DNA of 64,000 bases from IMGVR_UViG_3300032242_000723:1-64000, one strand, 5' to 3'. Counted from the first letter of the stretch, positions 6,710 to 60,092 are shown. Made by a program: numbers and translations. The notes: generated by a model not told the origin, from the sequence alone.

Positions 6710-6712
6710 AAT

Positions 6713-7354: not shown

Positions 7355-7378
7355 TAGTATAACATAGGTATTAGTTGA

Positions 7379-7879
7379 ATGTCAGTTTTATCGCCTATCC
7401 CTCAGGCATCATATCCCGCTACGATGGTGATTACTCGCACTGTCACTGTACAGGTGCAGCCAACAATCACGGCTTCATCTGCATATGTTGCTAACAACTG
7501 TGTGGGCGGTAAACTGACATTCAGTAATATATTAGGTCAACAGCAAAGTGGTGTTGTTCAAAACATCACTGTTGCTTGCAAGACTGCGCAAACTACTGGT
7601 TATAAATTGTATTTGTTTACAGCTAACCCATCTAATACTACTATAACTGATAAAGCTACCCCTACATTGAGTGTTCTTGATCTACCAAACTTAGTTGATG
7701 TGATCACACTAGGTGCATCGGATTCAACTCTTACTCCAACTTTAAACGTTGCAGACAACATTGGCCGTGCTGTAGTGTCATCTACTACTAATCTTTATGG
7801 CATTTTACTCGCAACTGGTACTCCTACCTATACTACCAATGATGCTATATTCGTGACGCTCACTGTATTACAGGACTAA
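7379..7879 (+). CDS. Putative virion structural protein
   Basis: 166 aa, T/V-rich, located in the tail operon. Confidence 0.55.
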   Translation: MSVLSPIPQASYPATMVITRTVTVQVQPTITASSAYVANNCVGGKLTFSNILGQQQSGVVQNITVACKTAQTTGYKLYLFTANPSNTTITDKATPTLSVLDLPNLVDVITLGASDSTLTPTLNVADNIGRAVVSSTTNLYGILLATGTPTYTTNDAIFVTLTVLQD

Positions 7880-7883
7880 ATTT

Positions 7884-8570
7884 ATGCCTAGTTATTTCGG
7901 CGCAAGAAGAGCATTAGTTAATATAGGTGGTGCAGGTCCCTCAGGTATTTTTAATATTGCACTCGCTTCGGGAGATTCTTCTGCAGGGCTTGCTACTAAC
8001 CTGCTATCCGCCGCCACTAATTATCCAAGATTGTTATTAAATATAACACAGTATACGAGCAGTACGTTGCCTGCTGTTACTGCTGGACAATTTGATGCTA
8101 TTTTATTCTGGTCAAATGGTACATTAACTTGGAACTCATCTTTTGATACGTTTAATAATGCAAACGGAGGTCTAGTTACTGGTCAATTTTACGGAAGTAC
8201 AGGAATAACTAGCATCACGAGCACGATCATGCCAACCGTAAGCGGTACTGGGGGTCAATCAGGCGGCGCTATCACTTGGCCAGTTGGACCCTATACTACT
8301 CCTATTGCAAACGGATACAATGGTACCACTCAACAAGTCAAGCCTTTTACTACATTTACCTATGCAGCTACGTCCCCTACATTAAATGCAGGAGCTACTA
8401 CTGTAGTGACCTCAACCGGAGGTGCAACTTTACCCTTCGTTATAGTTAAAGATAATACAGCACCCACCGGAAGAACAGTTTTTTTTAATGCTTACCCTCT
8501 TGATGGTAGTGATCCGAACTTCTCTTTATTGATGCTAAATTCACTGTTATGGGCTGCTAGAAAGATATAA
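7884..8570 (+). CDS. Putative virion structural protein
   Basis: 228 aa, T/G/S-rich, located in the tail operon. Confidence 0.55.
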   Translation: MPSYFGARRALVNIGGAGPSGIFNIALASGDSSAGLATNLLSAATNYPRLLLNITQYTSSTLPAVTAGQFDAILFWSNGTLTWNSSFDTFNNANGGLVTGQFYGSTGITSITSTIMPTVSGTGGQSGGAITWPVGPYTTPIANGYNGTTQQVKPFTTFTYAATSPTLNAGATTVVTSTGGATLPFVIVKDNTAPTGRTVFFNAYPLDGSDPNFSLLMLNSLLWAARKI

Positions 8571-45818: not shown

Positions 45819-46076
45819 ATGTCTAGAGTATTTAATTCCGAAGCTAAGCTCAAGTTGGTACAAATCATCAATGAAGGCATGGGCGTTCTACAAGAGATTG
45901 AGACATTAAACGAAGGTCTTAACGACACTGTTAAGGCAATCGCAGAAGAACTTGAGATCAAGCCAAGCATTCTCAAGAAGGCGATCAAGGTTGCCCACAA
46001 GTCCCGCTTAAATGAGACCAACGACGAAAACGCTGAACTCAATAATATCTTGGAGACTGTTGGTCGTACTGATTAA
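45819..46076 (+). CDS. dsDNA-binding protein (T4 DsbA / GapR-like)
   Basis: 85 aa helical; I..L.E...D..K.IAEELEIKPSILKKAIK pattern; SD AAGGAG. Confidence 0.55.
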   Translation: MSRVFNSEAKLKLVQIINEGMGVLQEIETLNEGLNDTVKAIAEELEIKPSILKKAIKVAHKSRLNETNDENAELNNILETVGRTD

Positions 46077-48790
46077 TGTATATTGACGCGATATTAGATA
46101 GCAATGCTGATCGCATTCATGTAGTTGAGCGTACTCCTGAGGGCAAAAGAGCATATAAAGAATATCCTACAAACTATGTTCTTTATTATGCCGATCCCAA
46201 AGGCAAACATCGCTCTATCTATAACGATCCAATCACTCGTTTCTCATCACGCAAACGCGGTGAGTTCGAGAAAGAGCGTAGGATTCACTCTAACAAGAAA
46301 CTGTTCGAGAGTGATGTCCCTGTAATCTTTAGATGTTTGTCTGAGAACTATCTCAACATTGATCCCCCAAAGCTTCATACATGCTTCTTCGATATTGAAG
46401 TGGACTTTGATCCTGAAAAGGGTTTCAGTCCAACTTCAGATCCATTCAATCCGGTAACAGCGATCAGCTTATATTTGGATTGGCAGGATCAACTTATCAC
46501 TTTGGTTACGCCACCAAAGCACATGTCGGACGAGACTGCACAAGAACTCACTAAGGATTTTCCTAACTGTTTCTTGTTCCGCAGTGAGATTGAGATGTTT
46601 GAGACATTCTTTGATCTTATTGATGACGCGGATGTGTTGACTGGTTGGAACTCTGAAGGATACGATATTCCCTATATGGTAAATCGTGTTACTCGCGTGA
46701 TGTCTAAGAATGACACTCGCAGGTTCTGTCTGTTGGGTCAACTTCCTAAACCACGCACATATGTACGCTTCGGCAACGAAGAGCAAACTTATGATCTTGT
46801 TGGTCGTATACATATGGACTATCTTCAGATGTATAAGAAGTACAACTATGAGTCTCGCCACAGCTATTCACTTGACGCTATTGGCGAATATGAACTAGGT
46901 GAACGCAAGACTCAGTATGAAGGTACGCTTGATCAACTATACAATAGAGACTTTAAGACTTTCGTAGAGTACAATAGACAAGATACTATGCTTGTGGCTA
47001 AGATCCACAACAAGTTGAAGTTTCTTGAACTCGCAAATGCCCTGGCGCATGAAAATACTGTACTGCTACCAACTGTTATGGGTTCGGTGGCTATGATTGA
47101 AATGGCGATTTATAATGAAGCACATGAACGGGGTTTCGTTGTCCCTGATAAAAAGCGTAGGGATTCGTCTAGTGGAGAGCAACAACAAGCAGCAGGTGCA
47201 TATGTTGCTGTACCGAAGAAGGGGATACACGAATACGTCGGAGCAGTTGACATCAACTCTCTATACCCCTCAGCGATCAGAGCACTTAACATGGCTCCAG
47301 AAACTATTATCGGTCAGGTCCGTCAAACACTTACTGACCAGTATATGCAGGAAAAAGGTGCTCGTCTGGGTGTTGAAAAGAAACGCAAAAAAGGCAGCGT
47401 TAATGAAGACGAAGCAGTAACTGGTTCTATTCTCTGGGAAAATCTCTTTGGTTCACTAGAATATACAGCTATTATGAACCAAGAGCGTGGTACAATGCTC
47501 ACACTTGACTATGAAAATGGTCATTCAAAAGAGATGTCTGCTGCTGAAATCTGGAAGATGATCTTTGACAGTCATAATCCATATATGATATCAGCGAACG
47601 GTACCATCTTTACATATGAGCGAGAGGGTATCATTCCTGGTCTATTATCACGCTGGTACTCAGAGCGTAAAGTACTTCAAAAGCAAGCTAAAGAAGCATA
47701 TGGTACTGATATGTTTGAGTATTATGATAAGCGTCAGCTTGTTCGTAAGATTCTACTCAACTCAGCATATGGCGCACTATTGAATGAGCATTGTCGTTTC
47801 TATGATAAGCGTATCGGACAATCAACTACATTGTCTGGTCGTCAGATCGTAAAGCATATGATGAGCCAGATCAATGAGACTATCGAAGGCAAGTATCAAC
47901 ATGACGGTGACTCAATCGTTTATGGTGACACTGACTCATGCTACTTTACAGCATATCCCGCTCTTAAGTCACAGATTGATGTTGGCGAACTTGAGTGGAA
48001 TAAGGAAAACTGCATAGAACTTTATGATAGTATCGCTGATATCGCAAACGAAAGCTTCCCTGCTTTCATGGAAAAGGCATTTCACTGTCCCCGTAAGAAT
48101 GGCGAGATCATCAAAGCTGGTCGAGAGTTGATCGGTGATCGTGCTCTATTCATTACTAAAAAGCGTTATGCGATCAATATCTTTGATAAAGAAAATAAGC
48201 GTAAGGACACTAACGGTAAGTTGGGTGAGATCAAAGCAATGGGTCTTGACTTGAAACGTGCTGATACTCCTAAGTATGTACAAGAGTTTCTAATGGAAGT
48301 ATTGTGCATGGTCATTCAAGATGGTAAGCCTCGTGATGAAGTCGTTACTAAGATCAGAGAGTTTAAAGACTGGTTATCAGAACAAGATAGCTGGACTAAA
48401 GGTTCTCCTAAATCAGTCAATAATCTAACTAAGCATACGATCAAGTATGAGAAAACTGGTAAGTGTAGTGTTGGTCATGCACTAGCGGCTATTAACTACA
48501 ACTACTTGCGTAGAATGAATGGCGATCAGTATAGTCAAAAGATCGTAGATGGCATGAAAGTCGTTGTATGTACTGTTAGAAACAATCCACTTGGAATTAC
48601 TTCTATAGCGTATCCAACTGATGAACGAAGACTGCCACAATGGTTCCTTGATCTACCGTTTGATGACAAAGAAATGGAACGTAAGCTTGTTGATGAAAAG
48701 ATTGAAAATCTTATCGGTGTTCTTAACTGGAATACTAGAACTGATACCAACACTAATAGTACAGTTGGTTCATTATTCAGTTTCGGTTAA
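46076..48790 (+). CDS. polB: Family B DNA polymerase
   Basis: Exonuclease motifs FFDIEVD, GWNSEGYDIPY, YNRQDT; polymerase motifs VDINSLYPS, KILLNSAYG, YGDTDS, KKRYA. Confidence 0.97.
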   Translation: MYIDAILDSNADRIHVVERTPEGKRAYKEYPTNYVLYYADPKGKHRSIYNDPITRFSSRKRGEFEKERRIHSNKKLFESDVPVIFRCLSENYLNIDPPKLHTCFFDIEVDFDPEKGFSPTSDPFNPVTAISLYLDWQDQLITLVTPPKHMSDETAQELTKDFPNCFLFRSEIEMFETFFDLIDDADVLTGWNSEGYDIPYMVNRVTRVMSKNDTRRFCLLGQLPKPRTYVRFGNEEQTYDLVGRIHMDYLQMYKKYNYESRHSYSLDAIGEYELGERKTQYEGTLDQLYNRDFKTFVEYNRQDTMLVAKIHNKLKFLELANALAHENTVLLPTVMGSVAMIEMAIYNEAHERGFVVPDKKRRDSSSGEQQQAAGAYVAVPKKGIHEYVGAVDINSLYPSAIRALNMAPETIIGQVRQTLTDQYMQEKGARLGVEKKRKKGSVNEDEAVTGSILWENLFGSLEYTAIMNQERGTMLTLDYENGHSKEMSAAEIWKMIFDSHNPYMISANGTIFTYEREGIIPGLLSRWYSERKVLQKQAKEAYGTDMFEYYDKRQLVRKILLNSAYGALLNEHCRFYDKRIGQSTTLSGRQIVKHMMSQINETIEGKYQHDGDSIVYGDTDSCYFTAYPALKSQIDVGELEWNKENCIELYDSIADIANESFPAFMEKAFHCPRKNGEIIKAGRELIGDRALFITKKRYAINIFDKENKRKDTNGKLGEIKAMGLDLKRADTPKYVQEFLMEVLCMVIQDGKPRDEVVTKIREFKDWLSEQDSWTKGSPKSVNNLTKHTIKYEKTGKCSVGHALAAINYNYLRRMNGDQYSQKIVDGMKVVVCTVRNNPLGITSIAYPTDERRLPQWFLDLPFDDKEMERKLVDEKIENLIGVLNWNTRTDTNTNSTVGSLFSFG

Positions 48791-48798
48791 CAACAACA

Positions 48799-48827
48799 TT
48801 GACAATCTCAATAACTTCCTATATTAT
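48799..48827 (+). promoter_or_regulatory. Sigma70-type promoter
   Basis: TTGACA-17nt-TATTAT. Confidence 0.7.
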
Positions 48828-48865: not shown

Positions 48866-49597
48866 ATGAAAGATTATCTACAAGACTTGATTCAACACAC
48901 ATATGGTCTTGGTGTTGTTGAACTCGTAAAGATTGACGGAACTGAAACTGAAACTACTGTTTCTGCACTATCCGAAGACAAGACCGTTATCGTAACTGGT
49001 ACGTTCAAGACTCCGATTGCTGACTTTATCGGTACATTCGGTATGCCTAACTTGTCAAAGCTCAAGACGATTTTGTCGTTTGATGACTATGACGATACGT
49101 CAACGATCAATGTTGGTCGTGGTACTAAGGAAGACCCAGATGCTCCTGCTCGTATTCACTTTGAGACGAAGGCAGGTGACTTTGTTAACGACTATCGTTT
49201 AATGGCTAAGTCCATCGTAGAAGACAAGATCAAGAAGGTCACATTCAATGGTGCTTCTTGGGATGTTAAGTTTGAGCCTACTGTTGCAGGCGTTATGCGT
49301 CTTAAGAAGCAGGCGTCTGTTCATAGCGAAGACATGAACTTTAAGACTAAGACTGACAATGGCAATCTAGTTGTCTATTTTGGTGACGTGTCTTCACACT
49401 CTGGTAACTTCGTATTGCAAGCAGGTGTGACTGGCAATCTTACTCGTTCTTGGAACTGGCCTGTAAAGGTGTTTCTTGCGATCATGGATCTTCCAGGTGA
49501 CAAGACGGTTAGCATCTCTGATCAGGGCGTTGCATTGATCGTTGTTGAAAACACGATCTCAACTTATCACTATTATCTGCCGGCACAGTCAAAATAA
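48866..49597 (+). CDS. Probable sliding clamp (gp45/PCNA-like)
   Basis: 243 aa, directly after the polymerase; FG...LSKL..IL and alternating beta pattern; a clamp loader is present in the window. Confidence 0.6.
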   Translation: MKDYLQDLIQHTYGLGVVELVKIDGTETETTVSALSEDKTVIVTGTFKTPIADFIGTFGMPNLSKLKTILSFDDYDDTSTINVGRGTKEDPDAPARIHFETKAGDFVNDYRLMAKSIVEDKIKKVTFNGASWDVKFEPTVAGVMRLKKQASVHSEDMNFKTKTDNGNLVVYFGDVSSHSGNFVLQAGVTGNLTRSWNWPVKVFLAIMDLPGDKTVSISDQGVALIVVENTISTYHYYLPAQSK

Positions 49598-49971
49598 TGA
49601 TCGGGTCTGTCAATGCTACGGGAAAGTATGTTAATACCACTAGCACCCCTGGCTATACCCATATTACTATTAATGCGAACCTTCGGGGTGCAGGCGATGT
49701 TCGATACCATTACTCAGGCTACTTAGAGGTATATGATGGTTACTCTTGGCATAGGGCTAGCGGTTCAACCATTGGGGTTGGATTAAACCCAGAAGCTGAA
49801 TCATTGCTTGATTGGGCTAAGAAAAAGCGTGATGAAGAACTAGCCCTTGAGCGTTTGGCAGAGTCTAGTGTTACTATTGCTGGATTGCTTCATGAAAAGA
49901 AAGACCTAGAAGACAAGATTAAGATGGTACAAATCTTACTAAAGGAAGAAGTACAACTTGGAACAAGTTAA
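49597..49971 (+). CDS. Hypothetical protein
   Basis: 124 aa, coupled to both neighbours. Confidence 0.6.
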   Translation: MIGSVNATGKYVNTTSTPGYTHITINANLRGAGDVRYHYSGYLEVYDGYSWHRASGSTIGVGLNPEAESLLDWAKKKRDEELALERLAESSVTIAGLLHEKKDLEDKIKMVQILLKEEVQLGTS

Positions 49972-51502
49972 TCTATCAACATCACATGATCCCAACTGGG
50001 CATTGTTTCTACCAGCAGTCTCGTCATTCTTTATTGCGGGACTAGGTAAGCAGCGTGAAGGTGAAAACTACTTTGACGCAGCGAGGATTCCTGCTCAGTT
50101 CAATGGTGATGTTGAGAAGTTAAACTTTCTTAACGAGAAAGAAGGCCTCTACACATATAAGTGGGGCTTGTATTCTGCTGGTCACGCGAACTTAGACATT
50201 ACGAAAGAAGACCACAATGAGTCTATCATTCGTAAGCGTGATCGCCAGAATACATTCTTGTTAGGTGACTCAGGTGGATTCCAGATATTGAAGTGTCAAT
50301 GGCCTGCTGACTGGAAGGACCCTAACTGTCCTCGTGCTATGAAAAAGCGTATTGAAGTTCTTAAGTGGATGGACGAATACATGGACTATGGCATGTGTCT
50401 GGATATCCCATCTCAGTCACTGACAACTTATCATATCAAGGATAAGAAGACTGGTACCTCAGCACATGGTATCAGCACGATTGAAGAAGCGATTACTGCC
50501 ACCCACATCAACAATGAGTATTTCATCAACAATCGTGATGGTCGTTGTAAGTTTCTAAATGTATTGCAGGGTCGTAATCATACACAGTCGGATGTCTGGT
50601 ATGAAGAGATGAAGAAGTATTGCGATACCAATGTCTATGGTGATCGTGCTTTCAATGGTTGGGCATTTGGTGGTCAAAACAAGATTGACATTCACTTGAT
50701 GCTTAAGCGTCTTGTTGGTATCATTCACGATGGTTATCTTGAAGAAGGCAAGCAGGATCTTATTCACTGTCTTGGTACTTCTATCATGGAGTATGCTGTA
50801 CTGTTTTCGGATATTCAAAAAGCCATTCGCAAGCATCACAATCCAAAGTTACAGATTACTTTTGACTGTGCTAGTCCATTCTTTGCTGCTGCTAAAGGTC
50901 TTGCTTACAACAACAACTCGTTTGAGCATAACAAGAAGTGGAGTTATTCTATGGAAAAAACTGCCGAGGATAAGAAGTACGCAACTGACAATCGTAAGTT
51001 CAGTGATGCGGTATTAACTGATAATATTCATAAGTTGTTCACTGATAGTCCAGTAACTGATCTATTGACTGTAAAAGACTTGTGCTATCGTGGCCAAGGT
51101 TTCTTAGGTCAACATGGTAAAGAAACAAAAACAAGCTGGGATACATTAAGCTATACCTTGCTCCAGGCTCACAATGTCTATCAACATATGACTGCCGTTC
51201 AAGAAGCAAATCGTAGATACGAACAGGGTACTAAGCCTAAAATGGTTATCGACCAGTTTGATACTAATGATTTTGGTGAGATCGTTGACGAGATTTTCTC
51301 GTTGAAAGATCGTCAAAAGAGTCTTGACATGATTGATAAGTATGACAAGTTTTGGCAGCAGATGAAAGCTGGTCAAGGGTTCTCAGGTAAGAAGACAGTT
51401 AACGCATCTACGATGTTCAATCAGTTGTTCACGGTTGAGGAATACGAAGTCGAGGAAGAGATTGAAGATAGTGACGATGCGATTTCGGAAGTATTAGATT
51501 GA
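49958..51502 (+). CDS. dpdA: TGT/DpdA-family guanine transglycosylase-like protein
   Basis: LLGDSGGFQI, MCLDIP, LNVLQG, GWAFGG, HCLGT, TFDCAS TGT-barrel motifs; next to deazaguanine synthesis genes; TTG start. Confidence 0.72.
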   Translation: MEQVNLSTSHDPNWALFLPAVSSFFIAGLGKQREGENYFDAARIPAQFNGDVEKLNFLNEKEGLYTYKWGLYSAGHANLDITKEDHNESIIRKRDRQNTFLLGDSGGFQILKCQWPADWKDPNCPRAMKKRIEVLKWMDEYMDYGMCLDIPSQSLTTYHIKDKKTGTSAHGISTIEEAITATHINNEYFINNRDGRCKFLNVLQGRNHTQSDVWYEEMKKYCDTNVYGDRAFNGWAFGGQNKIDIHLMLKRLVGIIHDGYLEEGKQDLIHCLGTSIMEYAVLFSDIQKAIRKHHNPKLQITFDCASPFFAAAKGLAYNNNSFEHNKKWSYSMEKTAEDKKYATDNRKFSDAVLTDNIHKLFTDSPVTDLLTVKDLCYRGQGFLGQHGKETKTSWDTLSYTLLQAHNVYQHMTAVQEANRRYEQGTKPKMVIDQFDTNDFGEIVDEIFSLKDRQKSLDMIDKYDKFWQQMKAGQGFSGKKTVNASTMFNQLFTVEEYEVEEEIEDSDDAISEVLD

Positions 51503-51565: not shown

Positions 51566-52027
51566 ATGACACAAAGTCCTGAACAAGCACAAGCCCTTGC
51601 CGAAAAGCGAGAGCGTATTAAGAGTAATGCAAGACGTATGATATTTGTGAAATTCCAGCGTGAGGGCATTCACAAGTATCCTGGTGCAGACACTGACCCT
51701 GCACTAGCAACGGGAGACTGGGATGACGTAAGTTTTCTAGGTTTCCCGCACAGACATATTTTCCACTTCACTGTGGGAATACAAGTATTTCACAATGATC
51801 GGGACATTGAGTTCATCCAGTTCAAGCGTTGGCTCGAAAAGAGTTTCAACGAAGGAACATTGCAACTTGATCATCGCTCATGTGAAATGGTTAGCGATGA
51901 GATGTATGAAATGATCTCTACTCGCTATCCTGGACGAGACATCAATATCACTGTCGCTGAAGATGGTGAGAATGGTGCAACTATTGAATACAATACATTA
52001 ATCCCCCTTCAACAAATGAAACTCTAA
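51566..52027 (+). CDS. Second T-fold QueD paralogue (DpdL-like)
   Basis: FLGFPHRHIFHF fits the LxxxHRHxF signature; SCEM...; a canonical QueD is encoded separately. Confidence 0.62.
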   Translation: MTQSPEQAQALAEKRERIKSNARRMIFVKFQREGIHKYPGADTDPALATGDWDDVSFLGFPHRHIFHFTVGIQVFHNDRDIEFIQFKRWLEKSFNEGTLQLDHRSCEMVSDEMYEMISTRYPGRDINITVAEDGENGATIEYNTLIPLQQMKL

Positions 52028-52037
52028 GGAATACAAA

Positions 52038-52280
52038 ATGGCTAAGGCCCAAGTTAAGTCTAATCTTTCCCGCACTCGTCAGGTGTTTGACGATCTTGAC
52101 TCTTATCGCGACTTCTGTCGGGATCATGGTTATAGGTTCGATGAGCGTGACCTGTATAGTTCTAAGAGCTATGTCTATCGGCAATTTCAAAAGTTTGTCG
52201 CAGGCAAGCCCGTTAAAAATCAATGGGAAATTGATTTAGCAAGATTTAAGGAACAAGGCACTAATATTCGCCGTATCTAA
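52038..52280 (+). CDS. Hypothetical protein
   Basis: 80 aa, SD AAGGA. Confidence 0.65.
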   Translation: MAKAQVKSNLSRTRQVFDDLDSYRDFCRDHGYRFDERDLYSSKSYVYRQFQKFVAGKPVKNQWEIDLARFKEQGTNIRRI

Positions 52281-52339
52281 TAAAGTGTTCACGGGGGATG
52301 CAAATCTCCCGTGAACCATCTATAATGAAAGAAAAACAT

Positions 52340-53527
52340 ATGCGTAAACTATTCTACCTGGGCTTGGAGTCTTATAAGGCTCGTTATACATTACAGTTAC
52401 AAGACTGGAACAGTCGCGTGTTCAAGGATCGTAAACTTAAGGTAACTTATGTTCCAGGTCAAACACTTGATAACAGTCAAAAGATCGTAGTGGGTCAAGT
52501 TCTCGATGCACATGGTCGTAGTTATTTCGCGATGAGTCAAATGATGAACCTAGTTGCTATGATGCAAAAGGGTGAAGTCACTAATAAAGACGTAGTTTAT
52601 TTTGAAGACATGTTTCAGCCCGGCTTTGAAAGTCTCGGCTACATTCTCAATCAAGTCGAAGCAGAACAACGTCCTCGTATCTTTGTTCGTTGTCTAGCAC
52701 AAACGATTGATCCAGATGACTTTGTTCATGTATGGGGAATGAGTAAGTGGATGGGCAACTACGAACATATGGTCAATGATATCGTCAAGTTCTCGAATGG
52801 TGCGGTACTTGCAACCAGCGAAGAGATGGTCATGAACATGAAGATCGCAGGATGGACTGCTGACATCTACAATATCTCAGGGCTTGCGTTTGGTAAGTAT
52901 GAAGTCATTGGTCGAGTTGGTAGTTTAAAGCCGTTTACTGATCGTCGTATGCGAGTGGTATTCTCCGCTCGTTGGGATCAGGAGAAACAGCCAGACTTCT
53001 ATATGGACTTGATTGAGCGATGGAACGAACGCTTCCCGAGCAAGGATGTTGAGTTCGTAGTCTGTAGTGGTGGTAAGCTTAACAGCAACAATCAAAGCTA
53101 CATGGCTCGTACCAAGAAGATGGTTGAAAACGGCAAGCTAACAGTTTACGAAGACTTAGAGAAGGATCGTTATTACGAAATCCTCAATGATAGTCGTGTC
53201 GTATTCAACTGTGCTCTTCAAGATTGGGTGTCAAACACAGTAAGCGAAGCAGACGCATTGGGATGCAATGTGCTTTATCCAGCATATCGTTCATTTCCCG
53301 AAACGTTTGCAAACGATCATGAGCGTCTATATACTCCATGGTCACTTGATGATGCTATCAATAAGTTGGATCCTCTACTTAGGAAGGCTCATATTAACAT
53401 GGGCAAGATCAGTGATTGGAACGACGGTACTATTGGGCGTATCATCGACATCATGGAAGGCAACGGAGAACAGTGGTCGCGTATGACTACTGATTATCGT
53501 AAACATTCTCGCAAAGAGAAATACTAA
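52340..53527 (+). CDS. GT-B glycosyltransferase
   Basis: VVFSARWDQEKQPDF...YYEILNDSRVVFNCALQDWVSNTVSEADALGCNVLYP; start reassigned to ATG 52340. Confidence 0.78.
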   Translation: MRKLFYLGLESYKARYTLQLQDWNSRVFKDRKLKVTYVPGQTLDNSQKIVVGQVLDAHGRSYFAMSQMMNLVAMMQKGEVTNKDVVYFEDMFQPGFESLGYILNQVEAEQRPRIFVRCLAQTIDPDDFVHVWGMSKWMGNYEHMVNDIVKFSNGAVLATSEEMVMNMKIAGWTADIYNISGLAFGKYEVIGRVGSLKPFTDRRMRVVFSARWDQEKQPDFYMDLIERWNERFPSKDVEFVVCSGGKLNSNNQSYMARTKKMVENGKLTVYEDLEKDRYYEILNDSRVVFNCALQDWVSNTVSEADALGCNVLYPAYRSFPETFANDHERLYTPWSLDDAINKLDPLLRKAHINMGKISDWNDGTIGRIIDIMEGNGEQWSRMTTDYRKHSRKEKY

Positions 53528-53562
53528 AACTAAGCGAACAATTATATTTAAGGAGTAAAATA

Positions 53563-53760
53563 ATGAACGCACATCAAGATATCGAAACACAAGTGGCCGC
53601 ATATCAGGCCGAGTCTGCTAAGTTTGAAGCAGGCAACGCTGCTGCTGGCACTCGTGCTCGCAAGGCATTAGCTGAACTTGCTAAGGCAGTCAAGGCACGT
53701 CGCAATGAAATCACTGAGACGAAGAATGCCCGTGCTGAAGCAAAATCTACAGCCGCATAA
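53563..53760 (+). CDS. Histone H1-like (Hc1-family) small protein
   Basis: KFEAGNAAAGTRARKALAELAK motif; SD AAGGAG. Confidence 0.65.
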   Translation: MNAHQDIETQVAAYQAESAKFEAGNAAAGTRARKALAELAKAVKARRNEITETKNARAEAKSTAA

Positions 53761-53838
53761 CTTATACTAAATAGAATGTAGGCTGCACAAAGGTGGTCTA
53801 CATTCTTCTACTACAACCATCACAAAGGAAGGTTAACT

Positions 53839-54519
53839 ATGAGCTTTAACAAACAAAAAACTGATCCCGATTTGGGTCGCAGAGTTCACGAACATCTTGT
53901 TCACGTTGGAGTTGAGACTCCTACTGTAGAAAACAATCTTAGTCGTACTGACAAGATCGAGATTATTGAACGGCATTTCAAGTCTATCATGGAAACAATG
54001 GGACTCGATCTAACTGATGACAGTTTGATTGATACGCCAAAGCGTGTTGCCAAAATGTATATCGGCGAAATCTTTTGGGGCCTCGACTATGAAGCATTCC
54101 CCAAGTGTACCGCAGTTAATAACAAGATGAAATATAATGAGATGGTCGTTGAGCGTAATGTAAACGTTCAATCTAACTGTGAGCATCACTTTGTCATCAT
54201 CGATGGCCTAGCAACAGTCGCATATGTTCCTAACGAAAAGGTACTTGGTCTATCAAAGATCAATCGTATCGTAGAATACTTCAGCAAGCGTCCACAAATC
54301 CAAGAACGTTTGACCGAACAGATTTTTCACACTCTACAATTTATCCTTGAAACAAATGATGTTGCCGTTATGATTGACGCACAACACTATTGCGTAAAAT
54401 CGCGTGGTGTGGAAGATACTGGTTCCTCAACGGTAACGGTTCGTCTTGGTGGCGGATTTAAGAACGATCCTGCTGCTCGTGCTGAGTTTCTTAGCATTGC
54501 ACGTATGGGCAAGTGCTAA
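53839..54519 (+). CDS. folE: GTP cyclohydrolase I
   Basis: DTPKRVAKMY, SNCEHHF, GLSKINRIV, RPQIQERLT, HYCVKSRGV. Confidence 0.96.
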   Translation: MSFNKQKTDPDLGRRVHEHLVHVGVETPTVENNLSRTDKIEIIERHFKSIMETMGLDLTDDSLIDTPKRVAKMYIGEIFWGLDYEAFPKCTAVNNKMKYNEMVVERNVNVQSNCEHHFVIIDGLATVAYVPNEKVLGLSKINRIVEYFSKRPQIQERLTEQIFHTLQFILETNDVAVMIDAQHYCVKSRGVEDTGSSTVTVRLGGGFKNDPAARAEFLSIARMGKC

Positions 54520-54543
54520 CAACTAATCGCCCGATTTTAATGC

Positions 54544-54572
54544 TTGACAATATAGCATGATTCGTCTATGAT
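54544..54572 (+). promoter_or_regulatory. Sigma70-type promoter
   Basis: TTGACA-17nt-TATGAT. Confidence 0.75.
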
Positions 54573-54634
54573 AGTGAAATCGGTCTATGCGTCATCCCGA
54601 TTAAGAAACTCTGCCGCATTACAAAGGATATAAG

Positions 54635-55126
54635 ATGACACAATATATGTATACAAGCACAAAAGAATACCACGATGCGTTTCCTTGTGCATATCGTCAA
54701 TGGCGGGCCGACAGTCACTGTAATAAGATTCATGGCTATTCATTTACTATCAAGGTTTACTTTGGTGCCAACACACTTGATGCACGTAATTGGTGTGCGG
54801 ATTATGGTGGGCTGAAGGACTTGAAGGCAATTCTTGAAGATCAATTTGATCACACACTTCTTGTTGCAGAAGATGATCCTGATATGGATATGTTCAAGAT
54901 GTTGCAAGAGCGTGGTATGGCAAAGCTTACTATCATCCCTGCAACTGGATGTGAAGCACTCGCTGACATGATTTATAAGTTCATCAACAGTGTCTATATT
55001 CCCGATCATTGGGGACAAGGTGAAGCAGAGCGTCTTTGGTGCTATCGTGTTGAAGTTCGCGAAACTCAGAGCAACATGGCTTTTCGTGAAGGTCATCGTG
55101 AATGGAATGAGAATCTGTTAGGATAA
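54635..55126 (+). CDS. queD: 6-carboxytetrahydropterin synthase
   Basis: SHCNKIHGYSF, DYGGLK..K..L...FDHTLL, TGCEALA, VEVRET. Confidence 0.85.
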   Translation: MTQYMYTSTKEYHDAFPCAYRQWRADSHCNKIHGYSFTIKVYFGANTLDARNWCADYGGLKDLKAILEDQFDHTLLVAEDDPDMDMFKMLQERGMAKLTIIPATGCEALADMIYKFINSVYIPDHWGQGEAERLWCYRVEVRETQSNMAFREGHREWNENLLG

Positions 55127-55668
55127 TGAAGCAGATTTATTATTCAAACGAACAGGTCAATGGGTTTGTTCATGAAATCATCAGACAGATGGTGCAAGAG
55201 AATTACAAGCCTGACTATATTGTAGGTATCACTAGGGGAGGTCTTGATTTGGCATTGAAACTAAGTCATTACTTAGATGTCCCCGTGCAAACCCTTAATG
55301 TAAGTTTGCGTGATAGTGAGCATTTTGAATCTAACTGTAGTATGGCAGAAGATGCGTTTGGTTATGTTGACGAAGAAGATCGCAAACAGGTTGGTAGTCG
55401 TTGGGATACGATGAAGCGTAAGAATATTCTTATCGTAGACGATATCAATGACACTGGCGCTACACTTGCATGGATCAAGCAAGATTGGCAAAGTTGTTGC
55501 CTGCCCAATGAACCAAGTTGGGAAACTGTTTGGGGAAACAATGTGAAGTTTGCAGTGTTGGTAGACAACATGGATAGCAAAGAAGAAGTTGACTACAAGG
55601 GTACCGAAATCAATAAGTTTGAGGAGCCTTCTTGGGTTATCTTTCCTTGGGAAAAATGGTGGAAGTAA
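55126..55668 (+). CDS. Type I phosphoribosyltransferase (xanthine/guanine PRT-like)
   Basis: IVGITRGG, ILIVDDINDTGATL (PRPP-binding motif), WVIFPWE. Confidence 0.9.
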   Translation: MKQIYYSNEQVNGFVHEIIRQMVQENYKPDYIVGITRGGLDLALKLSHYLDVPVQTLNVSLRDSEHFESNCSMAEDAFGYVDEEDRKQVGSRWDTMKRKNILIVDDINDTGATLAWIKQDWQSCCLPNEPSWETVWGNNVKFAVLVDNMDSKEEVDYKGTEINKFEEPSWVIFPWEKWWK

Positions 55669-56078
55669 TGGCCACACCAATGCGTGATGATCTAATGGTT
55701 CAGCAACAGATTACCTCTGAGTGGCAACACATGGTGGGCGTAATCATGCTGAACCAAACCCATAGGCAATCGGTAAAAAGAGTCCTACCAGAGTTTCTAT
55801 CATATTGGGACACATGCGAGAAGTTCATAAATAGTACTCCTGAAGAAGTTTACACAGTCATCAGACCATTGGGTTTAGTTGCCGTTCGGGAAAAGAGAAT
55901 CCGAATGATGTCCAACCAATACTTGACTTGGGACAAGAATGATGCTAAAGTGCTTTATGGTATAGGAAAGTACGGTAGTGATAGCTACGAGATTTTCTTT
56001 AAACAGAACTACACAGTGCAACCTACTGACAAAGAGTTGCTCCGTTACTTAGAGGAAGATGTCAATGCAATCACTTAA
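55668..56078 (+). CDS. MBD4-like HhH-GPD DNA glycosylase
   Basis: W...V.VIMLNQT, IRPLGL...R...I, LYGIGKYGSDSYEIF closely follow the MBD4 catalytic domain pattern. Confidence 0.8.
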   Translation: MATPMRDDLMVQQQITSEWQHMVGVIMLNQTHRQSVKRVLPEFLSYWDTCEKFINSTPEEVYTVIRPLGLVAVREKRIRMMSNQYLTWDKNDAKVLYGIGKYGSDSYEIFFKQNYTVQPTDKELLRYLEEDVNAIT

Positions 56079-56919
56079 GATAAGCGAACTATTCTATTCT
56101 ATTCAGGGCGAAGGAAGATATCAGGGTGTCCCGAGTATCTTCCTTAGGACGTTTGGATGTAACTTCACATGTGGCGGCTTTGGCATGCCTAAGGGAGAAA
56201 TGTCTGCTGAGCGTTTAGCGATTGATCCTAAAGAATATAAAGAATATGATGATCTTCCATTGGTCACTACAGGATGTGACTCGTATGCATCATGGGATCC
56301 TCGCTTTAAGAAGTTGTCCCCAGTGATGACGATTGATGCGATTGTTGATCGTATCATGGAACTATTGCCCCACGGTGAATGGCGTGATGAGCATCTTGTG
56401 ATCACAGGAGGTGAACCATTGCTCGGTTGGCAGAAAGTCTTTCCTGCACTGTTGAGTCATCCTAAAATGGCTAATCTTAAAGAGATTACATTTGAGACTA
56501 ACGGTACACAACCGCTTACTCAGGAGTTTGCAAACTATCTTGAAGATTGGACTTGGCCTCTGGAATATCCAGGATTTGAGCGTGAAGTCACTTTCTCTGT
56601 TAGTCCTAAGTTAAGTTGCAGCGGTGAACTTCGTGAAGAAGCGATCAAGCCTAAGGTCGTCAGTGATTACTATCAAGTAGGACATGTTTATCTCAAGTTT
56701 GTTATCGCAACTGAAGAAGATGCTGAAGAAGCATTGGAAGTCACCAAGTTGTATAATGAAGCTGGGTTTAGAGGTTCGGTATATTTCATGCCAGTTGGTG
56801 GTGTTGAAAGTGTCTATCATCTAAACAATCGCAATGTTGCTGATCTTGCCATGAAACATGGTATTCGTTATAGTGATAGATTACATATCCCTTTGTTCGG
56901 AAACAGTTGGGGAACATAG
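56059..56919 (+). CDS. queE: 7-carboxy-7-deazaguanine synthase (radical SAM)
   Basis: ISELFYSIQGEG, FLRTFGCNFTC...GCDSYASWD, ITGGEPL, FETNGT, SVSPKL, RLHI.LFG. Confidence 0.9.
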   Translation: MSMQSLKISELFYSIQGEGRYQGVPSIFLRTFGCNFTCGGFGMPKGEMSAERLAIDPKEYKEYDDLPLVTTGCDSYASWDPRFKKLSPVMTIDAIVDRIMELLPHGEWRDEHLVITGGEPLLGWQKVFPALLSHPKMANLKEITFETNGTQPLTQEFANYLEDWTWPLEYPGFEREVTFSVSPKLSCSGELREEAIKPKVVSDYYQVGHVYLKFVIATEEDAEEALEVTKLYNEAGFRGSVYFMPVGGVESVYHLNNRNVADLAMKHGIRYSDRLHIPLFGNSWGT

Positions 56920-57173
56920 TGTACCATCCAGATAAAGACTATCTTATGTTATCAGTGGCTACTCGAAAGTTCGCATGGCTACCAAAACGATGTGCGTACA
57001 CCAAAAAGATTCTTTGGCTAACTTGGGCATATTGTCTTGAATATGAGTTTCGTCAAGATTTCAGTACGCATTGGACTTATTCACCTGTTAAAATGGTTCC
57101 GATCCCATACCATTCTCCATATTGGTGTAGCAGCAAAGCATATGTATTCGCAAAACTTAAAGGTGAATTTTGA
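56907..57173 (+). CDS. Hypothetical protein
   Basis: 88 aa, overlapping both neighbours. Confidence 0.45.
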   Translation: MGNIVYHPDKDYLMLSVATRKFAWLPKRCAYTKKILWLTWAYCLEYEFRQDFSTHWTYSPVKMVPIPYHSPYWCSSKAYVFAKLKGEF

Positions 57174-58510
57174 AAACCTACAATAAGCGTATTGGATTTC
57201 TTGTTAGCTCACAAACCTTGATTCCTCACGGTGGTATCGGACAGTTCGCTAAGAGTTTTTGCGAGTTGATGGAATCACATGATATCAAGGTAGATATTAT
57301 TACTGACAAGGCTCCTCAAGGTCTTAGCACAGAGTTTCTTGAATCATTCAATGCTACTGTTATCTATCCAGACGAACCACTTAAGTACACGGATCATAGT
57401 GCAATCTTTATGTATGAGGATAGTTATTGCTATGAGAGAATGGCTAACTTCCGTAGTGCGATCATCAAGGCATTCTCTACTAACATATATGAAACATTAG
57501 TGTGTAATACATATGAAACTGTACAGGTTGCAAGTACATTAGGACTTGAGGAGTGTGTGCAGATTATTGCCTATACTCATCTTGAGAGTCAAATATTCAA
57601 AGACACAAAGAATCCATTCACGAGTAGTGTCAACGAAATGATGCGACTACAGTTATTGATGAATAACATCACGATTGGTACACAGAGTAAGTTCAATAGA
57701 CTTCAGTTTGAAGATGCGGTTCATCTTCCTATTCCAATCACTGAACGTGGACTACTTGAACAACATATCAAGCCTAGAGAAGGCGTACTGTTCATCGGAC
57801 GTTGGGAAGAGGGAAAGAATCCTGAGTTGTTCATCGACTTGATCGAACAGACAAAGTTACCGGCTAAGGTAATGACAAGCACTACTGGTGCTAAGAAGTT
57901 TGAAGAACGATTGAAAAAGATCGGTGCTACTTACGAGATCAAGATCGGCATCATTGGACAAGAAAAGGTAGACTTCATCACGAGTGCGAGGGTAGCATTT
58001 AATCCTAGTACGGTAGAAAGCTATGGTATGGCATTCTATGAGCAAACGATTCAGCTACCTACATTCTGTTTAGATAATCAACGCTGGACACAGAACTTCT
58101 CCAGTCAGTTTTTCTTTACAACAGATAAGAGAAATATGGCTGAGGCCGTTAAAGGTGCATATGAGATGTTTGATACTGCTGAATCTTGGTACGGTAAAGG
58201 ATGGTTAGAGAACAGGATCGCAACAGAAGATCAAGTGTTTCATAAGTGGAACTCATGCTTCTCTGAGTTTGAACCTAAGAAATCAAATAACAATACTGCT
58301 AAGATTTGCAACGAAACTACGACTAAGTATGCTGACTTTGTAGATTCACTGAAGCGTAGGGTTCTGTGTATTGATGACATCAAGTCTGTTTTAACGAACA
58401 AATATAAGTTTAGATTGATCTATACTGATACTGACACATATTTGACTAAGGATCCTCACTTCGAACCTACTGAAGAAGTATCTGGTTTAAGTTTGTTTGC
58501 TGGATTATGA
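57170..58510 (+). CDS. GT-B glycosyltransferase
   Basis: PHGGIGQF, VLFIGRWEEGKNPELF, AFNPSTVESYGMAFYE. Confidence 0.8.
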   Translation: MKTYNKRIGFLVSSQTLIPHGGIGQFAKSFCELMESHDIKVDIITDKAPQGLSTEFLESFNATVIYPDEPLKYTDHSAIFMYEDSYCYERMANFRSAIIKAFSTNIYETLVCNTYETVQVASTLGLEECVQIIAYTHLESQIFKDTKNPFTSSVNEMMRLQLLMNNITIGTQSKFNRLQFEDAVHLPIPITERGLLEQHIKPREGVLFIGRWEEGKNPELFIDLIEQTKLPAKVMTSTTGAKKFEERLKKIGATYEIKIGIIGQEKVDFITSARVAFNPSTVESYGMAFYEQTIQLPTFCLDNQRWTQNFSSQFFFTTDKRNMAEAVKGAYEMFDTAESWYGKGWLENRIATEDQVFHKWNSCFSEFEPKKSNNNTAKICNETTTKYADFVDSLKRRVLCIDDIKSVLTNKYKFRLIYTDTDTYLTKDPHFEPTEEVSGLSLFAGL

Positions 58511-58524
58511 TGTCACCATTATGG

Positions 58525-58553
58525 TTGACATTCTGCCTATTGTCGTATATGAT
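58525..58553 (+). promoter_or_regulatory. Sigma70-type promoter
   Basis: TTGACA-17nt-TATGAT. Confidence 0.75.
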
Positions 58554-58603: not shown

Positions 58604-59638
58604 ATGACTGATAATATCAAGCGTATTGGTTTTGCGTGTAAGTTTGCAGAAATCAACAAAAAGGGCGAGATCGCTAGTGTCGAGGGTCTTAACACTGGTG
58701 GTACCACGCTAGCCTGGGCAAAGCGTCAATCAAATGCTCGCATCGTTGAAGAAAAGATTATGGATGTCGCAAAACGCAACATCGTAAATACTCACGCACT
58801 TGTCAAAAAGGTAGCAACTCTTCCTGTTGAACTGCGTATGTTACGCATTACCAGTGATATGCTAAGTTTCTATACGCATCCTGACTATCATTATTTTTGG
58901 TCGCGTCAAGATGTTCAGGACAGCCTAGCACGTTGGATGGCTCCTATCGGCGATACTGCTCGCAAACATAATGTTCGCCTATCATTTCATCCTGATCAGT
59001 TTGTAGTTCTTGCTAGTGATCGCGAAGAAGTCGTAGACAACAGTATCCGCGAGTTTGAATATCACGTTGATATGGCACGTTGGATGGGCTATGGCAAGAC
59101 TTTTCAGGATATGAAGATCAATGTTCATATTAGTGGTAGGCAAGGTCCCGATGGTATCAAGAAGGTAATGTCGCGTCTTAGCCCTGAGGCTCGTAACTGT
59201 ATCACTATCGAGAATGACGAGATTACATGGGGCATTGATAGCAGCTTAGAGCTTGCTGATACCTGTGCACTGGTACTCGATATACATCATCACTGGGTCA
59301 TGTCTGGCGAGTATATCGAACCAACTGATGATCGTATTAAGCGTATCGTTGATAGCTGGCGTGGGGTGCGTCCTGTCATTCACTACAGCGTAAGTCGTGA
59401 AGATGTACTGCCTGGTCATTGCAAGGTAACTCGTCCTGAACTAACTACATTACTAGAAAGTGGTCACAATAAACAAAAGCTACGTGCTCATAGTGAATAC
59501 TATTGGAATAGTTCTGTCAACGAGTGGGCAATGGAACACTATGATTGGGCCGATGTGATGTGCGAGAGTAAAGCAAAAAATCTTGCGAGCTTTGCATTAT
59601 ACAATACATACATTAAGAAAAAGGTAACTAATGTTTAA
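58604..59638 (+). CDS. uvsE: UV damage endonuclease
   Basis: RIGFACK, RLSFHPDQF, NVHISG, ITIENDE, VLDIHHHW, HYSVSR, KLRAHS, MCESKAKNLA. Confidence 0.92.
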   Translation: MTDNIKRIGFACKFAEINKKGEIASVEGLNTGGTTLAWAKRQSNARIVEEKIMDVAKRNIVNTHALVKKVATLPVELRMLRITSDMLSFYTHPDYHYFWSRQDVQDSLARWMAPIGDTARKHNVRLSFHPDQFVVLASDREEVVDNSIREFEYHVDMARWMGYGKTFQDMKINVHISGRQGPDGIKKVMSRLSPEARNCITIENDEITWGIDSSLELADTCALVLDIHHHWVMSGEYIEPTDDRIKRIVDSWRGVRPVIHYSVSREDVLPGHCKVTRPELTTLLESGHNKQKLRAHSEYYWNSSVNEWAMEHYDWADVMCESKAKNLASFALYNTYIKKKVTNV

Positions 59639-60092
59639 AGCAATCAAAGACTGGATCAGTCCTCCACCCCCACCCCCTCCCCCGCCACCTCCACCTCCCC
59701 CACCGCCGCCGAAGCCAAAGAAGCCACGTGCTATTCGTAAGCCTAAACCAGTTCCTCCTAAGATAGAACTTACAGCTAAGGAGAAGGCAACGGCTGCAGG
59801 TGAACCATATGTTGCTATTCTACGAGTTGATTTAGATCCTGGTGACATCAATAACGGTTCGTTTGAGTTAGATTGGAACGATAAGTTCTTATTGAATCTG
59901 ATCAAGCAAGGATATAAATTCGCACAAAAAGACACTGATGCTGAGATTGTTGACCGTTGGTTCCAAACAGTATGTCGCAACATCGCAATGGAAGTATATG
60001 AGCAAGAGATTGCTGATCCTGAAAAGCGCGAAAGTGAACTACGCATCATTAGGTCAAAAGATTTAGGCGACGGATTTACTGAGGTTAGTTAA
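59631..60092 (+). CDS. Conserved hypothetical protein with an N-terminal polyproline tract
   Basis: 17 consecutive Pro codons at 59661-59711, then FELDWNDKF...VDRWF. Confidence 0.7.
   Translation: MFKAIKDWISPPPPPPPPPPPPPPPPPKPKKPRAIRKPKPVPPKIELTAKEKATAAGEPYVAILRVDLDPGDINNGSFELDWNDKFLLNLIKQGYKFAQKDTDAEIVDRWFQTVCRNIAMEVYEQEIADPEKRESELRIIRSKDLGDGFTEVS

Follow-up and report, generated by a model that had tools for sequence, protein, structure and literature searches.

We found that two predicted GT-B glycosyltransferase genes of this giant phage are tied to the genes inferred to replace guanine in its DNA with 7-deazaguanine. This suggests, without proving, a sugar-decorated deazaguanine DNA base that no paper in the library searched describes. 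The window, the whole 64,000-nucleotide stretch IMGVR_UViG_3300032242_000723:1-64000, belongs to a 333-kb genome. All genes and promoter candidates described below between 48799 and 60092 lie on the + strand. The initial annotation had placed GT-B genes at 52340 and 57170, flanking folE, queD, a phosphoribosyltransferase (PRT), a glycosylase and queE, with no hydroxymethylase for C or U, and this observation was confirmed.

The first transferase, GT1, occupies 52298-53527. Its likely true start is 52340, corresponding to Met15, where most homologues begin. It is followed by an Hc1-like histone H1-type DNA-binding protein (53563-53760; PF07432, 1.7e-13), FolE, GTP cyclohydrolase I (53839-54519; Pfam 207 bits, 1.5e-61; PHROG 7e-75), and QueD of the CPH4 synthase type, with motif CxxxHGY (54635-55126). 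Next come a purine-type PRT (55126-55668; PF00156, 1.6e-16), with only generic, weak HGPRT/XPRT matches, and an MBD4-like HhH-GPD DNA glycosylase (55632-56078). The latter matches MBD4 glycosylase domains over the full domain (E 9e-15), and the Asp in its GSDSY aligns with the Asp of MBD4's GNDSY. The PRT and the glycosylase are considered accessory. QueE, the radical-SAM CDG synthase, lies at 56059-56919 (PHROG QueE-like, 6.7e-58), and the second transferase, GT2, at 57170-58510. Between these two, o88 (56907-57173) is a small ORF of doubtful reality, found only in the closest relative and with no family match.

Two genes just upstream of GT1 had been missed. The first is DpdL (51566-52027), a QueD paralogue proposed to decarboxylate CDG to 7-deazaguanine. 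In it, the CxxxHGH of QueD is replaced by FLGFPHRHIFHF, which fits the published LxxxHRHxF signature, with L58-GFP-H62-R-H64-I-F66 invariant. By tblastn it is 54% identical to ACP17 DpdL and 32% to phiST DpdL, and hhalign relates it to QueD at 87%.

The second is o514 (49958-51502), probably a divergent DpdA, the TGT-fold DNA guanine transglycosylase. No Pfam TGT (PF01702) hit was found in any of 7 members or in the whole genome, and a profile search of PDB sequences returned nothing. The DSGGFQ (a TGT signature), HxLGxS and D-x-x-S motifs are invariant and align with the classical phage DpdA of X1/ACP17/BUCT-ZZ01/BCSR5, but hhalign supports this match with only 78.5% probability (E 1.7e-5, 190 columns). 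A weak tblastn hit to a “TGT domain-containing protein” was also seen. The gene occupies the slot next to DpdL and GT1 that classical DpdA holds in other cassettes.

The block also contains o80 (52038-52280), a small basic protein (pI 9.7) conserved between DpdL and GT1 in this clade. Its conserved first gene is o243 (48866-49597), a homologue of PA5oct gp170. Downstream of QueE, in nearly all relatives, lies o153b (59631-60092), a homologue of PA5oct gp160. The claim that the transferases share early operons with the deazaguanine genes rests only on sigma70-like TTGACA-17-TATxxT sites in intergenic gaps. These candidates lie at 48799-48827, ahead of the block from o243 through o514, DpdL and GT1 to FolE (TTGACA-17-TATTAT, 11/12), at 54544-54572, ahead of QueD-PRT-glycosylase-QueE-GT2 (TTGACA-17-TATGAT, 11/12), and at 58525. 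They are consensus matches and not proof.

Pfam glycosyltransferase scores are below the gathering cut-offs, with 22.3 bits against 25 for GT1 (PF13524) and 21.8 against 26.4 for GT2 (PF00534), although some homologues do pass. The GT-B fold is supported by structure prediction. The AlphaFold model of GT1 (pLDDT 75) aligns by VIA-align to retaining GT4/GT20 enzymes with Z about 21 over about 310-335 residues, and Z 19-21 to PimA, MshA, BshA, SPS and OtsA over about 300-335 residues. The GT2 model is poorer (pLDDT 60), but its Foldseek hits are GT-B enzymes only. In the GT1 family R225, E229-K230 and E317 are invariant across 10 sequences at 18-68% identity, and GT1 keeps only the first Glu of the EX7E region. 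In GT2 both E283 and E291 of EX7E are invariant. The role of these residues in NDP-sugar binding is inferred from position.

We then considered glucosylation of hydroxymethyl-cytosine or hydroxymethyl-uracil, as in T-even phages, which is very improbable here. The only thymidylate-synthase homologue in the 333-kb record is a full-length ThyA (355 bits) directly after DHFR, no dCMP/dUMP hydroxymethylase was found, and no hmC/hmU pathway exists in the genome. Neither transferase has a detectable sequence relation to T4 AGT/BGT: PDB sequence searches gave no hits and tblastn against phages found no T-even enzymes. Only the GT-B fold speaks for this reading, with T4 alpha-GT (1ya6) at rank 31 of the structural matches.

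The co-occurrence of both transferase families with dpdA/dpdL, which had been named beforehand as a check, was examined across phages. GT1 belongs to a large, apparently virus-specific family found beside DpdL wherever we looked. All 18 strict hits among 50,697 cultured phage records carry DpdL, which is itself found in only 28 records. The record-level hypergeometric P is about 1e-62, but these represent only six independent cultured lineages (the PA5oct group, ACP17, X1/BUDD, BCSR5, Phosso and BUCT-ZZ01). In PA5oct, ACP17, X1, BCSR5, Phosso and BUCT-ZZ01, GT1 lies within 4 kb of DpdL, often abutting or overlapping it. DpdL and GT1 are adjacent in 31 of 32 PRT-seeded loci with DpdL and in 77 of 80 GT1-seeded IMG/VR loci, the other three lacking upstream flank. 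Of 671 clusters at E<=1e-30, 4 of 4 deeply divergent members sampled have DpdL within 1.5 kb.

GT2 is an accessory, and every testable carrier has deazaguanine genes. Of 80 loci, 78 lie within a deazaguanine gene cluster, mostly directly downstream of QueE or FolE and mostly followed by an epimerase/dehydratase, the usual arrangement being a QueE-GT2-epimerase/dehydratase triad. The other 2 lie in genomes that carry DpdL elsewhere. A compact eight-gene cassette, QueE-FolE-GT2-DpdA-DpdL-GT1-epimerase-QueD, moves between unrelated phages and occurs in a T4-like cyanophage background. It contains only one extra frame, an opposite-strand homing-endonuclease-like ORF. Relatives carry variable NDP-sugar tailoring genes inside the module, namely epimerase/dehydratase, UGDH and a C-methyltransferase.

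These results bear on the possibility that the transferases act on something unrelated, such as virion proteins or host envelope glycans, and are merely co-located with the deazaguanine genes in a shared early or anti-defence region. Phage-encoded GT4 enzymes for capsid or cell-surface glycosylation exist, and the homologues of o243 and o153b are annotated as virion proteins in PA5oct, with MS evidence recorded for gp170. In X1 and in two 460-kb genomes the GT2-like gene lies far from DpdL, and the sugar dehydratase and aminotransferase of the present genome lie 215 kb away. However, chance co-location cannot explain a GT1-DpdL adjacency kept across unrelated phage backbones, across diverged clusters of a family that has hundreds of them, and in a compact mobile cassette. 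No GT1 family member was found in any phage record lacking DpdL, as the 24%-identical PhiXhv-type GT, in a GlmS/BshB context, is a different branch. We regard this reading as unlikely.

The interpretation given in the initial annotation, a glycosylated deazaguanine in DNA, is therefore partly supported. The analysis shows the gene content, the absence of a hydroxymethylase and a strong functional linkage of both transferases to the deazaguanine genes, while sugar transfer itself, deazaguanine-modified DNA as the acceptor, the atom that would carry the sugar, and the decarboxylase activity of DpdL are inferred. The suggested sugar on the CDG carboxyl is disfavoured, since GT1 always travels with DpdL, the proposed CDG decarboxylase, and phiST, which has DpdL, contains plain dDG (PMC10516641). 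The suggested disaccharide fits the pattern of a core GT1 and an accessory GT2, but is pure inference.

The explanation we favour, with about even confidence, is that both transferases are dedicated parts of a 7-deazaguanine DNA-modification module and not stray sugar genes. In this view FolE, QueD and QueE, by homology, make CDG from GTP, and DpdL removes the carboxyl to give 7-deazaguanine, a step proposed in the literature but never shown biochemically. The DpdA-like o514 would then exchange this base for guanine in phage DNA. GT1, a retaining-type GT4-like enzyme that keeps its NDP-sugar-binding Arg/Lys/Glu, would put a sugar on the modified DNA. GT2 would add a second or an alternative sugar, probably from an NDP-sugar tailored by an epimerase/dehydratase. 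In this genome the sugar enzymes lie elsewhere, with an epimerase at 271790-272743, a DegT aminotransferase at 272709-273779 and a UGDH at 245630-246829. The PRT would most simply recycle the released guanine to GMP/GTP, and in relatives an IMPDH/GMP-reductase-family gene may serve the same supply role. With the carboxyl gone, candidate attachment points are the electron-rich pyrrole carbon (a C-glycoside) or the exocyclic N2, as in huimycin-type glycosides. The biological role would be protection of phage DNA from restriction and other DNA-sensing defences. PA5oct, which carries the module, has DNA resistant to G-containing restriction sites, through an undefined chemistry (PMC12191111).

Some considerations weigh against this explanation. 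No chemical evidence shows a sugar on DNA. 7-Deazaguanine has no obvious hydroxyl or amine handle at C7, and a retaining GT4-type enzyme making a C- or N-glycoside on DNA is not known to have a precedent. About half of the DpdL lineages (phiST, RHph_I1_18, Ahp1, Bakedbeans, D479 and MA9V-3) lack GT1, and since phiST DNA is plain dDG, GT1 is not needed for the base itself. GT1 and GT2 are acidic to neutral (pI 6.7 and 5.5), and they have no detectable sequence relation to T4 AGT/BGT, with the structural match to 1ya6 only at rank 31. The merely probable assignment of o514, the sub-threshold Pfam scores and the poor GT2 model add to these doubts.

Alternatively, the transferases may act on a free 7-deazapurine or pterin base, or on a nucleotide, and not on DNA. 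The product would be a glycosylated small molecule, like huimycin, dapiramicin or cyanobacterial pterin glycosides, or a base glycosylated before DpdA inserts it. Known 7-deazapurine natural products carry sugars on N2 through GT-B enzymes (bioRxiv 10.64898/2026.04.15.718813), and the tetrahydrobiopterin glucosyltransferase of Synechococcus PCC 7942 is among the tied top structural matches (Z 20). The PRT, the decarboxylase-like DpdL and the IMPDH/GMP-reductase-family gene of relatives echo the tubercidin pathway, and neither transferase is a basic protein. On the contrary, the module always contains a DNA transglycosylase (a classical DpdA or the probable one, o514) and sits among replication genes (PolB, FEN, helicase, UvdE). 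The PRT is present in the clade, BUCT-ZZ01 and PA5oct, but was not found near DpdL in ACP17, X1 or Phosso. The structural matches are generic to GT4, all tied at Z 19-21, and a phage gains little that is obvious from a diffusible glycoside. This reading is unlikely, although it is the strongest of the alternatives.

A more doubtful possibility is that GT1 is an obligatory non-glycosylating helper of DpdA/DpdL, delivering the base or working in a complex. This would explain the published failure of ACP17 dpdA+dpdL to make dDG in E. coli, where the authors remarked that other enzymes may be required. Among cultured DpdL phages, GT1 presence correlates perfectly with the long or o514 type of DpdA, and the genes are frequently translationally coupled. 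However, the predicted NDP-sugar-binding Arg/Lys/Glu are invariant down to 18-25% identity, NDP-sugar tailoring enzymes keep appearing beside GT1/GT2, and phiST dpdA+dpdL also failed in that experiment, although phiST has no GT1.

Lastly, we compared the module with known systems. The DpdA/DpdL dDG system of Cellulophaga phage phiST (Cui, Hutinet et al., NAR 2023, PMC10516641) shares FolE-QueD-QueE without QueC, a DpdL with the LxxxHRHxF motif, a TGT-fold transglycosylase (only probable here) and a location next to the DNA polymerase. It has the short DpdA3 and neither GT1 nor GT2, while here a GT-B partner is fixed next to DpdL, a second GT, a PRT and a glycosylase are present, and the probable transglycosylase is a long, divergent type that Pfam TGT does not detect. 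The T4 alpha- and beta-glucosyltransferases acting on hmC DNA are likewise phage-encoded GT-B enzymes of a DNA-modification pathway, and two transferases could give mono- or disaccharides, as in T2/T6. They differ in sequence and depend on a hydroxymethyl handle, absent here, whereas the present enzymes are GT4-like and the base would be installed by post-replicative exchange rather than through the nucleotide pool.

The replication/modification block of the Pseudomonas jumbo phage PA5oct (Wroclawvirus) is syntenic, in the order PolB-gp170-gp168(o514)-gp167(GT1 family)-gp166(DpdL)-gp163(PRT-like)-gp162(QueE)-gp160-exonuclease. PA5oct has the short GT1 form, about 20% identical to that of the window, no GT2 and no FolE in this block, with its QueD elsewhere (gp230). 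The queuosine glycosyltransferase QTMAN (GTDC1) of animal tRNA is a GT4-family GT-B enzyme that glycosylates a 7-deazaguanine derivative inside a nucleic acid. It acts on tRNA, on the cyclopentenediol hydroxyl of queuosine, and no queuosine-type side chain can be made here, as no QueC, QueF, QueA or QueG was found; no sequence relation was detected. Finally, the huimycin/dapiramicin and tubercidin pathways of actinomycetes share 7-deazapurine cores decorated by GT-B transferases on N2 (huimycin, dapiramicin) and a CDG-based route with PRT, a decarboxylase and a GMP reductase (tubercidin). Their products are free metabolites from preQ0 or CDG, the tubercidin decarboxylase is a UbiD-type enzyme, and no DNA transglycosylase is involved.

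We first confirmed the gene order of the region. The window is the first 64 kb of a 333,115-bp IMG/VR virus record, about 92% complete and with 41% GC. All genes described here are on the + strand. The region starts with PolB (46076-48790), followed by o243 (48866-49597), o124 (49597-49971), o514 (49958-51502), o153 (51566-52027), o80 (52038-52280), GT1 (52298-53527), a gene for a chlamydial Hc1-type, histone H1-like protein (53563-53760, Pfam 1.7e-13) that sits between GT1 and FolE, FolE (53839-54519), QueD (54635-55126), the phosphoribosyltransferase PRT (55126-55668), an HhH-GPD glycosylase (55632-56078), QueE (56059-56919), o88 (56907-57173), GT2 (57170-58510), UvdE (58604-59638) and o153b (59631-60092). 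A helicase and an Eco57I-type methylase lie further downstream. The initial annotation, which placed two GT-B genes at 52340 and 57170 on either side of the deazaguanine genes, is correct in its coordinates and gene list, and its observation is confirmed. Its start at 52340 is Met15 of the longest GT1 frame, where most homologues begin. A megablast search of the region against cultured phages gave no match.

Some features of these genes deserve mention. PolB shows a weak NUMOD4 match (residues 491-540) inside the polymerase domain, and in PA5oct the polymerase gene is split by a homing endonuclease. QueD of this clade has CxxxHGY instead of the canonical CxxxHGH, with an extra His preceding the Cys (SHCNxIHGY). 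The HhH-GPD glycosylase is specifically MBD4-like, matching a T/U:G mismatch glycosylase domain over the full domain (E 9e-15), and the Asp in its GSDSY aligns with the one in GNDSY of MBD4. It is present in only some relatives, while Phosso has a differently related “glycosylase” directly upstream of DpdL. At 48799, 54544, 58525, 60111, 62293 and 63951 a recurrent perfect TTGACA -35 box with a 17-nt spacer and TATxxT is found in intergenic gaps on the + strand. By consensus match these are likely host-sigma70 phage promoters, which would define the operons. Finally, a very long open frame of more than 2,146 residues (3-6443) runs off the start of the window.

In terms of family assignment, the Pfam matches of both transferases are below the cut-offs, and searches against PDB sequences with GT1, GT2, DpdL, o153b and o514 returned nothing useful. 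The fold evidence is stronger. The AlphaFold model of GT1 (pLDDT 75) is a GT-B fold, with Z 19-21 to some fifty retaining GT4/GT20 enzymes, all tied, among them PimA, MshA, BshA, sucrose-phosphate synthase, OtsA and the tetrahydrobiopterin glucosyltransferase. GT2 folds less well (pLDDT 60), but it matches only GT-B enzymes and has an invariant EX7E motif. Across GT1 relatives down to 18% identity, the Arg/Lys pair (R225, K230) and E317 are invariant, at the positions that bind the NDP-sugar in GT4 enzymes. From this conservation we infer that both are active NDP-sugar transferases. The match to the tetrahydrobiopterin glucosyltransferase, together with FolE and a PTPS-like gene, hinted at a pterin glycoside, but this is one of about 50 tied GT4 structures and the cluster always includes QueE and a DNA transglycosylase, here the putative o514, so this reading was rejected.

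Next, two genes upstream of GT1 were not included in the coordinates of the initial annotation. The first, o153, carries FLGFPHRHIFHF, which is exactly the LxxxHRHxF signature that defines DpdL, the QueD paralogue proposed to be the CDG decarboxylase giving 7-deazaguanine (PMC10516641). It hits the DpdL of ACP17 at 54% and that of phiST at 32%. The second, o514, has no Pfam TGT match, but it has invariant DSGGFQ, HxLGxS and D-x-x-S motifs, and it aligns by hhalign (78.5%, E 1.7e-5, 190 columns) to the classical phage DpdA of X1 (annotated as queuine tRNA-ribosyltransferase), ACP17, BUCT-ZZ01 and BCSR5. It also occupies the slot that classical DpdA holds in other cassettes. We first read the PRT, with no Pfam TGT and no QueC, as a sign of a DpdA-free, nucleotide-level route similar to that of tubercidin. 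After finding DpdL and the DpdA-like o514 we retain this only as a minor alternative, and the genome most likely installs the base by DpdA-type exchange, with o514 as the probable enzyme.

GT1 is a fixed partner of DpdL. In 50,697 cultured phage records, DpdL occurs in 28 and the strict GT1 family in 18, all of them among the 28. These are the PA5oct group, ACP17, X1, BUDD, BCSR5, Phosso and BUCT-ZZ01, which represent six independent lineages. In every one of these GT1 lies within 4 kb of DpdL, often abutting or overlapping it. On the contrary, six DpdL lineages (phiST, RHph_I1_18, Ahp1, Bakedbeans, D479 and MA9V-3) lack GT1 in their whole record, in a search supported by a positive control. 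The five of these that were tested also lack the long DpdA type, in a search without a positive control. In two of the GT1-negative phages, Vibrio phage Bakedbeans (gp176, 7245-8426 of its locus L093) and Chryseobacterium phage MA9V-3 (7470-8354 of its locus L095), DpdL is fused to an N-terminal domain of about 200-260 residues with no assigned function. The GT of the Xanthomonas PhiXhv-12 type, 24% identical to PA5oct gp167, is a different branch in a GlmS/BshB-like context and was not counted in the GT1 family.

The same association is seen in IMG/VR, where 31 of 32 PRT-seeded loci with DpdL have GT1 just downstream, and 77 of 80 GT1-seeded loci have DpdL just upstream, the other three lacking flank. 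The family is large and apparently virus-specific, with 671 clusters (50% identity level) at E<=1e-30 in a representative library whose entries carry no taxonomy. Four distant members were looked up, and all four sit within 1.5 kb of a DpdL, in phages with other replication modules. One small contig (L264, 1-8150) has FolE, DpdL, a GT1-like gene, a GT-A (Glycos_transf_2), a polysaccharide deacetylase, a radical SAM gene and a second GT1-like gene, that is, three transferases and a deacetylase in one deazaguanine cluster.

As for GT2, it is accessory but equally tied to the pathway. Within the clade only the closer relatives have it. Of 80 IMG/VR loci with a GT2 relative, 78 lie within a deazaguanine gene cluster, where GT2 is mostly directly downstream of QueE or FolE and in most is followed directly by an NAD-dependent epimerase/dehydratase. 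The remaining two are in 462-465-kb genomes that carry DpdL, and in one case GT1, elsewhere. In Xanthomonas phage X1 (locus L004) the GT2-like gene (113058-114374) lies beside an NAD salvage set (NAMPT, NMNAT, NAD synthase) and a 2OG-Fe(II) oxygenase, 40 kb from the phage's own GT1-DpdA-DpdL-QueE cluster. Hits to GT2 in Erwinia jumbo phages (22%, partial) were too distant to be considered.

Furthermore, six loci and the cultured T4-like cyanophage BUCT-ZZ01 carry a compact cassette, QueE-FolE-GT2-DpdA-DpdL-GT1-(epimerase)-QueD, which contains nothing else apart from an opposite-strand homing-endonuclease-like ORF in one locus (L236). Such a cassette, moving between unrelated backbones, is the strongest argument that all of its genes serve one product.

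In terms of sugar supply, relatives carry epimerase/dehydratase, UDP-glucose/GDP-mannose dehydrogenase, NDP-hexose C-methyltransferase, HIT, SAM synthetase and methyltransferase genes inside the module. A Rieske ring-hydroxylating oxygenase, the NDP-hexose C-methyltransferase and an extra radical-SAM enzyme are found inside the module of some relatives (L033:6900-8087; L015:3249-4478; L015:11216-12358), and the oxygenase could create a hydroxyl handle on the base or the sugar. In the present genome (G000:C1), outside the window, DHFR, a methyltransferase, ThyA, an NDP-sugar epimerase/dehydratase and a DegT/EryC1 sugar aminotransferase lie in a row at 269465-273779, with the last two at 271.8-273.8 kb, and a UDP-glucose/GDP-mannose dehydrogenase (UGDH) lies at 245630-246829. 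The phage may make an amino-deoxy sugar nucleotide. This variable sugar tailoring is what an arms race over a DNA glycan would produce, although this is an inference.

No alternative handle was found in the genome. The only thymidylate-synthase homologue is full length (355 bits) and follows DHFR, so it is an ordinary ThyA, and glucosylation of hmC or hmU was rejected. No QueC was found either. A PP-loop ATPase of 327 aa (G000:C1, 68861-69844) has only a weak N-terminal QueC-like match (20 bits) and is not a convincing QueC.

Taken together, the interpretation in the initial annotation, a glycosylated deazaguanine in DNA, is partly supported, as the linkage is strong and the chemistry is open. 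What the comparisons show is the gene content and the association of both transferases with the deazaguanine genes. The steps of FolE, QueD, QueE, DpdL and DpdA, including the decarboxylation proposed for DpdL, rest on homology and on the literature, and sugar transfer by GT1 and GT2 is inferred. The initial annotation had given as an example a sugar on the CDG carboxyl, which is unlikely because DpdL accompanies GT1 everywhere and DpdL-bearing phiST has plain dDG. The acceptor would then be a deazaguanine without a classical handle, leaving a C-glycoside on the electron-rich pyrrole carbon, or N2 as in huimycin-type compounds. Neither is known to have a precedent on DNA, and other explanations therefore keep real weight, namely a small-molecule or pre-insertion acceptor, an unrelated acceptor, or a non-catalytic helper role. 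The PRT is accessory, being absent near DpdL in ACP17, X1 and Phosso, and is most simply guanine salvage feeding GTP back into the pathway.

A further-reaching possibility, which we consider unlikely on present evidence, is that in a very abundant, world-wide group of jumbo phages, and in cultured PA5oct, ACP17, X1, BCSR5, Phosso and BUCT-ZZ01, every guanine replaced by 7-deazaguanine is further glycosylated. The sugar would be attached directly on the handle-free deazapurine, for example as a C-glycoside on the pyrrole carbon, and GT2 and variable NDP-sugar tailoring genes would then give lineage-specific mono- or disaccharides. That would be a new class of DNA hypermodification and a new type of glycosyltransferase chemistry on DNA.

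Deazaguanine DNA modifications and DNA glycosylation are both known anti-restriction strategies, and we found no paper that links DpdL or deazaguanine DNA with glycosylation, although the literature searched was incomplete and a prior description cannot be excluded. The text of the study that proposed DpdL does not mention the GT next to ACP17 DpdL, but it notes that dpdA+dpdL did not work in E. coli and that other enzymes may be required (PMC10516641). The present work defines a large, apparently virus-specific glycosyltransferase family with the genomic signature of being next to DpdL. This may explain why dpdA+dpdL alone did not reconstitute dDG in E. coli, points to the modified G of PA5oct-type therapeutic jumbo phages, and names six cultured phage groups in which a new DNA base could be revealed. 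If the prediction is true, it adds a new hypermodified nucleoside, new enzymes for DNA glyco-engineering and a new variable that defence systems such as END nucleases may sense.

Lastly, we compared the module with known systems. T4 alpha-GT is only Foldseek rank 31 among the structural matches of GT1. In several relatives an IMPDH/GMP-reductase-family gene (236 bits; 6080-7144 of locus L008 and homologues, cluster c33) lies directly after GT1, which together with the PRT and the decarboxylase-like DpdL mirrors the tubercidin gene set. It fits either a tubercidin-like nucleotide branch or simply a boost to GTP supply. The window's clade is syntenic with Pseudomonas jumbo phage PA5oct, where the order is PolB, gp170, gp168 (o514), gp167 (GT1 family, short form), gp166 (DpdL), gp163 (PRT-like), gp162 (QueE), gp160 and exonuclease, and the DNA of PA5oct is reported as G-modified, with unknown chemistry.
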